Positions 6,957 to 7,028 of a stretch of DNA of 37,221 bases are shown one piece after another. The notes under the pieces were generated by a model. It searched no databases, had not been told where the DNA came from, and saw nothing but the letters and a program-made list of their open reading frames with translations. The translations under genes were made by a program, and so were the position numbers. Within the stretch, counting starts at the first letter, position 1, and every line of letters begins with the position of its first letter. The stretch covers positions 18,589,016 to 18,626,236 of the forward strand of contig NC_068996.1 in assembly GCF_001194135.2 (NCBI RefSeq). The letters are read 5' to 3'. The DNA is from Octopus bimaculoides (lineage: Eukaryota).

Positions 6957-7028
6957 TCATCAGCTACCCCCGTTTTAACACCGGCGTTTCGAAGAGCTGG
7001 GTAGGACGCATCGTTAAAACGGCTCTTC
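6957..7028 (-). ncRNA. Candidate hammerhead ribozyme with non-canonical (split/permuted) strand order
   Basis: CUGAUGA 6963-6957, GAAA 6990-6987 and GUC 7007-7005. Stem I 6 bp, stem II 7 bp, stem III 4 bp plus a 9-10 bp extension, all in register with the core. Confidence 0.5.

Follow-up and report, generated by a model that had tools for sequence, protein, structure and literature searches.

The locus considered here lies on the minus strand of a 37,221-nucleotide (nt) stretch of DNA from Octopus bimaculoides (NCBI RefSeq assembly GCF_001194135.2, contig NC_068996.1, positions 18,589,016 to 18,626,236), which we call the window and number from its first letter. It raises a plain question: what is to be made of 72 nt that carry every conserved part of a hammerhead ribozyme in an order that none of the conventional types I, II and III follows? 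A first-pass annotation had put the motif forward as a candidate new ribozyme topology inside a repeat resembling a Penelope-like element (PLE). We find that it is the known mirror cyclic order of hammerhead strands, namely cleavage strand (S), GAAA strand (G) and CUGAUGA strand (C), together with the fourth helix that goes with this order, here in an animal genome. We read it, tentatively, as a mirror-order hammerhead-class RNA that would fold into four helices and cut after C7005; on the present analysis we favor this reading but stop just short of calling it probable.

Read 5′ to 3′ from 7028 to 6957, the motif is GAAGAGC CGUUUUAAC GAU GCGUC CUACCC A GCUCUUC GAAA CGC CGGU GUUAAAACG G GGGUAG CUGAUGA. 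All invariant hammerhead positions are present in it (C3-A9, G12-A14, A15.1-U16.1, C17 and G10.1-C11.1, and also C15.2-G16.2), and the core is complete, consisting of CUGAUGA (C3-A9, 6957-6963), GAA (G12 A13 A14, 6988-6990), the pair A6987-U7006 and C7005. The positions that the first-pass annotation gave for GUC (7007-7005), GAAA (6990-6987) and CUGAUGA (6963-6957) are exact on the minus strand.

Helices I, II and III abut this core in register with 6, 7 and 4 Watson-Crick pairs, respectively. Stem I is formed by CUACCC (positions 1.1-1.6, 6999-7004) and GGGUAG (2.6-2.1, 6964-6969), which pair 6/6. Stem II pairs 7/7 between GAAGAGC (10.1-10.7, 7022-7028), which stands at the 5′ end of the motif, apart from CUGAUGA, and GCUCUUC (11.7-11.1, 6991-6997), the last base of which is C11.1; the pair G10.1-C11.1 is then G7028-C6991, with G6955 as an alternative G10.1. 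Stem III pairs 4/4 between ACGC (15.1-15.4, 6984-6987) and GCGU (16.4-16.1, 7006-7009), including A15.1-U16.1 and C15.2-G16.2. The fourth helix is made of CGUUUUAAC (7013-7021), which follows the stem II strand with a 0-nt linker, and GUUAAAACG (6971-6979), with 9/9 pairs; it comes to 10 if C7022 and G6970 are counted, G6970 being otherwise a 1-nt linker to stem I. The remaining linkers are GAU (7010-7012) from the fourth helix to stem III, CGGU (6980-6983) from stem III back to the fourth helix, and the single A6998 that leads from stem I straight to stem II at the S-to-G junction.

Counted as one pseudoknotted structure, the four proposed helices give 26/26 Watson-Crick pairs (7 + 9 + 4 + 6), and the earlier statement that every core element is in register is borne out. 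When the helix partners are shifted by 1 to 3 columns as a register control, only 38-50% of positions pair. An independent repeat finder returned a perfect 10-nt inverted repeat (6970-6979 and 7013-7022), which is the fourth helix.

The strand order, as the first-pass annotation had read it, is cleavage strand, GAAA strand, CUGAUGA strand, with the chain opened between A9 and G10.1. Neither the conventional type I, II or III order nor a nested three-way junction is seen, the order being S, G, C and the helices crossing one another. The annotation had also suggested pseudoknots and a second junction where the distal ends of stems I and II come together, and this fold does need both. Its expectation that standard models would miss the motif holds as well: Rfam at the gathering threshold gave no hammerhead or other ribozyme match in the whole window, and at an expectation value (E) of up to 10 over 6700-7400 it gave no hammerhead or ribozyme either, the only matches being weak, microRNA (miRNA)-like ones in an AT-rich hairpin at 6826-6888.

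It is on novelty that the earlier view has to be revised. Types I to III were taken as the only established strand orders, which is out of date, since non-circularly permuted hammerheads with the three blocks reordered were described by Eckert, Friedrich, Weinberg & Weinberg, NAR 2023 (PMC10085705), the single study from which non-circular permutation of a structured RNA is known. Type SGC is represented there by 583 sequences (the HRIMA-1 motif and variants), type CSG by two and type GCS by one, which is bacterial; ribozymes of the three types cut at the predicted site, and a core G mutation abolishes cleavage (PMC10085705). For SGC-3, disruptive and compensatory mutants showed that all four helices are needed, including one "joining the other sides of stems I and II" (PMC10085705). 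The octopus motif has the cyclic order of this mirror class, S, then GAAA, then CUGAnGA, and it has the helix tying the other sides of stems I and II, 9-10 base pairs (bp) long (7013-7021(22) with 6971(70)-6979) and 0-1 nt from stems II and I. As a new topology it therefore stands only in part: strand order and fourth helix were published and validated by cleavage in 2023, and what is new is only the position at which the chain opens (A9/G10.1, or a two-strand stem II) and the setting in an animal genome. The opening touches the definition of the blocks, for S, G and C are taken as uninterruptible, with 2.x-CUGAnGA-10.x contiguous (PMC10085705). In our motif the C block is not intact even when 1-2 inserted nt are allowed, the 7-bp partner of 11.x being at the opposite (5′) end from CUGAUGA; contiguity of CUGAUGA with 10.x is found only for a 3-bp stem II (A-GGA, 6956-6953).

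In the fold that we propose, the RNA would form stems I, II and III plus the fourth helix (helix IV) as a pseudoknotted structure in which stems I and II meet at their far ends in a second junction. In hammerhead chemistry the 2′-OH of C17 attacks the adjacent phosphate, with G12 and G8 assisting. By analogy, cleavage is predicted to occur in this usual way after C7005, the C17 of GUC, and the placement of the scissile bond at 7005/7004, as already predicted in the first-pass annotation, agrees with the position of this residue relative to stems I and III. The open junction at A9 could be accommodated in two ways. The pair G7028-C6991 might simply stack on A9. Alternatively, the 3′ tail A-GGA (6953-6956), which gives an extra nt after A9 and then a possible contiguous start of stem II, might provide pairs 10.1-10.3 (G6955-C6991 as G-C, G6954-U6992 as G-U and A6953-U6993 as A-U), while the 5′ strand would provide 10.4-10.7 (G7025-C7022 with 6994-6997) and helix IV. 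We consider this bipartite stem II the more likely of the two. It would keep the catalytic core continuous, like that of SGC-type ribozymes, and in a nearest-neighbor estimate it comes to about -12.7 kcal/mol, versus about -13.2 kcal/mol for the continuous 7-bp helix. The first-pass annotation had named the 3-bp alternative as a caveat; the three pairs are indeed there, and we would rather see in them a possible asset.

The A-GGA tail possibly resembles the extra nt and G10.1 of SGC-type, PLE-type and chrysanthemum chlorotic mottle viroid (CChMVd) hammerheads. In HRIMA-1 the extra nt after A9 is conserved, reading CUGAUGA-U-G in every alignment row shown (PMC10085705), and the SGC-3 oligos, as we interpret them, also have an extra nt between A9 and G10.1. 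The same holds for PLE minimal hammerheads (Cervera & de la Pena 2014, PMC4209133), and the PLE hammerhead of the window itself reads CUGAUGA-A-GG, the same as the motif with its tail. As an inserted nt at 9/10.1 is tolerated in several lineages and the A-GGA tail can pair, the apparent break in the core is softened.

Folded separately as mini-hairpins, the four helices give -10.0, -8.9, -3.9 and -8.4 kcal/mol. Nested folding of the 72 nt yields at best -18.7 kcal/mol (z = -0.3 relative to shuffles), and the nested minimum free energy (MFE) for 106 nt gives z = +1.5. An unremarkable nested MFE is expected because the helices cross, and the helix energies, set against the weak nested fold, make it plausible that the four-helix fold is the ground state, provided that sterics allow it. 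Helix lengths might suggest that such a closed cage cannot form for steric reasons, but this objection was dropped, since SGC and CSG ribozymes, which have the same four helices, do cleave in vitro.

Several points weigh against a mirror-order ribozyme at this locus. To our knowledge, activity has never been demonstrated for a hammerhead opened at A9/G10.1. The motif is one sequence, with no homologue among the scans of the window and of metagenome, viral and prokaryote collections, and offers no covariation. Stem III and helix IV are bridged by both strands, forming a 3 x 4 internal loop, whereas one of the two connections is free in each of the validated mirror types, so that the motif is the tighter structure; even for the published types, the connection between stem III and helix IV was stated to be not obviously compatible with the crystal structure (PMC10085705). 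Its GC content is 53%, compared to ~38% in the surrounding 2 kb, and it holds no G-U pairs or mismatches; perfect pairing and high GC fit a very young, a constrained or a non-native sequence equally well. Finally, all of RefSeq was searched by Eckert et al. for intact SGC, CSG and GCS, and the sole accession in their oligo list from outside IMG/M is one bacterial RefSeq record (PMC10085705), which makes an abundant intact family in sequenced animals unlikely.

A more far-reaching version is that the motif represents a seventh hammerhead permutation that functions as a plain linear RNA although CUGAUGA is split from the main stem II strand, with the chain ends in the catalytic junction or with stem II put together from two strands, and that it arose in an animal from an SGC-type ancestor by tandem duplication and complementary loss; this we hold to be doubtful. 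For its origin, the most economical course would be the tandem duplication of an SGC-type unit, then loss of the outer halves, and the ancestral unit was probably part of a small sequence resembling a retroelement or satellite. Duplication followed by complementary loss is the model proposed for circular permutations (PMC10085705).

Relatives of the motif were searched for in several ways. Within the 37-kb window, both blastn at word size 7 and a sequence-only profile with filters off returned only partial matches at chance level (E 1-10), and the motif is single-copy there. Exact 22-23-mers from both motif halves have no match in metagenome contigs, viral contigs or prokaryotic genomes. A six-frame pseudo-protein of 6890-7110 found no match among 5.8 billion proteins; a control query with the three-copy PLE-hammerhead repeat of the window found one UniRef Octopus bimaculoides protein only in the same database, which is therefore uninformative on copy number. 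A minus-strand match of 29-41 nt in the neighboring short interspersed nuclear element (SINE), at 6655-6683/6695, to the S-G segment was rejected as chance (E 0.087 locally, 4.1 window-wide). Elsewhere on the minus strand, at 1399-1415, CCGUUUUACGAUGGGUC followed by GAAAC matches motif positions 7-24 at 16/18 with one gap, also at chance level (E 5 window-wide), and none of the helices nor a CUGAUGA is found near it.

The alternative that survives best, though we judge it unlikely, is that the motif is the monomer relic of a tandem-repeat or circular SGC-type element, complete only when CUGAUGA is joined by the GAAGAGC of the next unit, so that the solitary unit would be inactive. The motif spans the cyclic order exactly once, and metazoan hammerheads are typical of tandem repeats and retroelements, often being active only as dimers (Cervera & de la Pena 2014, PMC4209133). 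The flanks were inspected with this in mind. Downstream, a 10.x-like GGAAAAU differs from GAAGAGC at four positions, all of them transitions, and uncertain vestiges of a next unit follow on the minus strand in the expected order: CGUUUU at 6929-6924 and again at 6915-6910, then AAUGUC directly followed by CUGUACCCAG at 6903-6888. The upstream flank ends with UCCAUGG at the place expected for CUGAUGA. By local alignment the similarity of the flanks to the unit is not significant (119/500 and 387/500 shuffles reach the observed score), a profile search gave no flank match at E up to 10, and Tandem Repeats Finder (TRF) found no tandem repeat at the motif flanks. The putative vestiges of a neighboring unit would fit tandem duplication of an SGC-type unit with complementary loss, but we take them, noticed from sequence and after the fact, as a post hoc hint only. 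A unit of 72-73 nt is also far below the size of any hammerhead satellite or circular RNA known to us, which counts against a relic, and a neutral remnant is unlikely to stay perfect over 72 nt beside flanks decayed past recognition. No animal record is among the accessions that the article itself gives for its RefSeq-wide SGC, CSG and GCS searches (PMC10085705). Were the flanks homologous to the unit, their decay beyond recognition beside a perfect 72 nt would point to selection acting on the split form; otherwise the motif would be an isolated insertion.

Could short motifs and inverted repeats in a repeat-rich genome have come together here by chance, with no RNA function at all? We scanned both strands of the window with a descriptor that asked for CUGANGA, CGAAA and UH in a range of ±150 nt, whatever their order; the stem II strand could lie anywhere, the stems had to reach 4/4/3 or more, and G-U pairs were accepted. 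The sole combination of CUGAUGA, GAAA and GAAGAGC is that of the motif. Three alternative cleavage-site candidates were returned too, with U16.1 at 7106 and 6913 and a third at 6899; the pairing of the first two is almost wholly G-U within U-rich flanks; the third is the downstream GUC site in the possible next-unit vestige. Expectations were worked out by analytical arithmetic, taking a GC content of ~0.36, the window's counts of CUGANGA (19) and CGAAAC (25), and ~0.27 as the probability of a Watson-Crick pair per position. The core with stems I to III at the observed quality, in any order, is expected ~2e-5 times per 37-kb window, or about once per genome of 2-3 Gb, a figure to be read with the caveat that an unknown number of windows and patterns had been screened beforehand. 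At such a rate the three-stem picture alone is unconvincing at genome scale. A 10-bp inverted repeat is not rare by itself either, and there is but a single copy. The fourth helix, whose 9 pairs begin within 0-1 nt of stems II and I on their distal side as in the validated mirror class, adds a factor of ~3e-5, bringing the analytical expectation to ~5e-10 per window, and the compactness of the motif, all within 72 nt with linkers of 0-4 nt, reduces it further. All 26 pairs are Watson-Crick, and no other locus of the window comes close even at relaxed thresholds. The arrangement is not plausibly a product of random sequence, and we regard the chance explanation as quite improbable.

One observation on background belongs here. 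CGAAAC occurs 25 times in the whole window against 11.6 expected from dinucleotide shuffles, and 0/100 shuffles reach 25; one site lies in a tRNA-derived SINE (6549-6554) and two in PLE-hammerhead repeats (12403 and 29927). This excess implies a higher background for hammerhead-like descriptor hits in this genome.

For a sequence that is not native to the octopus, be it misassembled, contaminant, inserted or engineered, we keep a small probability on account of the lack of wobble pairs and the GC contrast. The helices are perfect, the core is consensus, the length is exactly one period, restriction-type sites (GAAGAGC/GCTCTTC, CCATGG and TTCGAA) lie at or beside the helices, and the scaffold is rich in N gaps. 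However, the motif sits within a contiguous stretch of ~4 kb between such gaps, beside a SINE and microsatellites typical of the window; the metagenome, viral and prokaryote collections hold no match to it; and the adjacent SINE stretch is likewise GC-rich (0.59 over 6655-6695). That two decayed conventional type I PLE-like hammerheads in tandem left remnants mimicking the reversed order is barely credible, for although PLE-type minimal hammerheads sharing CUGAUGA-A-GG do exist in the window (at 29.6-29.9 kb and 12.4 kb), deriving S-G-C from tandem C-G-S takes three deletions, each exactly at a helix boundary and together removing every one of the three hairpin loops, conventional hammerheads of the PLE family have nothing equivalent to the fourth helix, and the motif has neither similarity to the PLE hammerhead repeats of the window nor an adjacent PLE open reading frame (ORF).

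The earlier placement of the motif inside a PLE-like repeat has no support: there is no second copy in the window, no PLE ORF lies within ~4.7 kb, and the PLE hammerheads of the window, which have the conventional order, bear no sequence relation to it. The nearest ORF of reverse transcriptase (RT) or GIY-YIG type, ~4.7 kb off, is a GIY-YIG fragment at 11790-12220 on the plus strand, opposite to that of the motif and separated from it by an assembly gap. Naiad PLEs, which insert into (TA)n, are reported to carry "HHR_core" motifs (Craig et al. 2021). Overall, the window belongs to an animal scaffold rich in gaps, in which microsatellites occur along with SINEs derived from tRNA and remnants of retroelements.

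On the minus strand, the motif is followed downstream by an AT-rich hairpin, a (TA)n tract and a SINE. The hairpin (6826-6887, ~70 nt downstream) has 22-nt arms that are 82% complementary, and its matches to miRNA families are weak (E 0.1-5, far below gathering). The tRNA-derived SINE (~6508-6745, plus strand) lies as an insertion within a (TA)n/(ATATT)n microsatellite, flanked by similar AT-repeat at 6448-6490 and 6743-6785.

Hammerheads of the PLE type occur at two places in the window. A PLE remnant on the plus strand (11790-12470) comprises GIY-YIG endonuclease-like ORF pieces at 11790-12074 and 12026-12220 and, 3′ of them, a tRNA-like head (12247-12311) and a decayed copy (12376-12410) of the minimal hammerhead found at 29.6-29.9 kb, in which CUGAUGA is lost and GAAACGUUGUGU is kept. 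Two further minimal hammerheads, at 29890-29935 (plus strand) and ~29580-29625 (minus strand), lie in an inverted repeat with arms 29501-29692 and 29826-30017 that are 86% complementary. The plus-strand copy at 29890-29935 reads GACAC CUGAUGA A GGCUGG..CAGCC GAAACGUU GUGU, with an extra nt after A9 and a palindromic ACGU instead of helix III, and is the dimer type of Cervera & de la Pena 2014 (PMC4209133). Rfam detected neither of the 29.6-29.9 kb copies, even at E up to 10. Each PLE-type hammerhead is preceded by a tRNA-like segment of ~65 nt (GC.TATGG.GTAGT.GTTAAG...TTCGATTCCAGGCA), found at 12247-12311 and 29753-29817 on the plus strand and as an inverted copy at ~29690-29745; ARAGORN called no tRNA in the whole window. 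This suggests that the PLE-type hammerhead units are composite and SINE-like, starting with a tRNA-like head, continuing in an (AAT)n tract and ending in a hammerhead tail. Judged by eye from the translations, ORF fragments at 21100-21813 (plus strand) resemble the reverse transcriptase of a non-LTR retrotransposon (…CPIHKGGSRADAKNYRPVSLTS…), and 14024-14465 holds a mariner/Tc1-like transposase remnant (…ITGDETW…).

Should the motif prove active, it would extend the mirror-order class to an animal genome, beyond environmental circular RNAs. It would also demonstrate a further connectivity, either the A9/G10.1 opening or the two-strand stem II, showing that blocks presumed indivisible can be split, and give a concrete case of a permutation evolving through duplication followed by loss. 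Such hammerheads would still escape genome screens that use Rfam models or descriptors of the six block orders. If inactive, the motif would serve as a calibration case for how far single-sequence ribozyme look-alikes can reach.

It remains to place the motif among hammerheads already described. The rodent one is a precedent for discontinuity: Martick et al. are said to have reported, in 2008, a discontinuous hammerhead in Clec2 3′ untranslated regions, with the conventional order and one loop very long. Our motif shares with it an animal genome and parts that are not contiguous in the usual way; the Clec2 ribozyme, however, needs no pseudoknot and keeps its CUGAUGA block intact. Closer in host and in some details are the PLE minimal hammerheads, which have metazoan hosts, a long helix II (7-8 bp), an unpaired nt between A9 and G10.1 and the sequence CUGAUGA-A-GG. 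They differ in having the type I order, an absent or palindromic helix III, action as dimers and a location in the pseudo-long terminal repeat (pLTR) next to RT/GIY-YIG ORFs, whereas in the motif the order is reversed, helix III has 4 bp and is extended by helix IV, and no PLE ORF is adjacent; the motif does not belong to them.

With CSG-1 the motif is collinear over 10.x - helix strand - 3-nt linker - 16.x - C17 - 1.x - linker - 11.x - GAAA - 15.x, and stem I has 6 bp in both; CSG-1 has no insertion at A9/G10.1. The CSG-1 junction as we rebuilt it from the oligos is 10.x-G-CCGCAU-UAG-GUUGU-C, with linkers of 1 nt and 3 nt, where the motif has 0 nt and 3 nt (GAU). In CSG, however, helix strand - 2.x - CUGAUGA forms the 5′-terminal segment and runs on into 10.x, while in the motif this segment is at the 3′ end and joined to 15.x by CGGU.

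With SGC the motif shares the 5′-to-3′ order and every core nucleotide; a short linker leads from stem I to stem II (A here, typically 3 nt in SGC), and 15.x leads via CGGU (4 nt, compared to 0-44 nt in SGC) to the helix strand and then to 2.x-CUGAUGA (after 1 nt here, 0 nt in HRIMA-1 and SGC-3), with the fourth helix at the other sides of stems I and II and an extra nt after A9. What differs is the position of the stem II 5′ strand and of the second fourth-helix strand, which are 3′ of CUGAUGA in SGC but at the 5′ end here, where GAU joins them to the stem III 3′ strand. The helices are longer in the motif (6/7/4/9 bp vs about 5/5/5-6/4-7), and the conserved stem I AUGUU/AACAU of HRIMA-1 is absent. 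No helix or linker sequence is shared with HRIMA-1 or SGC, and the setting is an animal scaffold with SINE and microsatellites, whereas the known mirror-order examples are almost entirely metatranscriptomic contigs thought to be circular RNA replicons (PMC10085705). Each junction of the motif has its counterpart in a validated mirror type, and all these arrangements can be drawn on one circle. SGC, CSG and GCS are three peripheral openings of the cycle C-10.x-helix-S-G-helix′-C, and the octopus motif is exactly one turn of that same cycle, opened at A9/G10.1, which makes it a simple circular permutation of the mirror class, though one that splits a block presumed to be indivisible.

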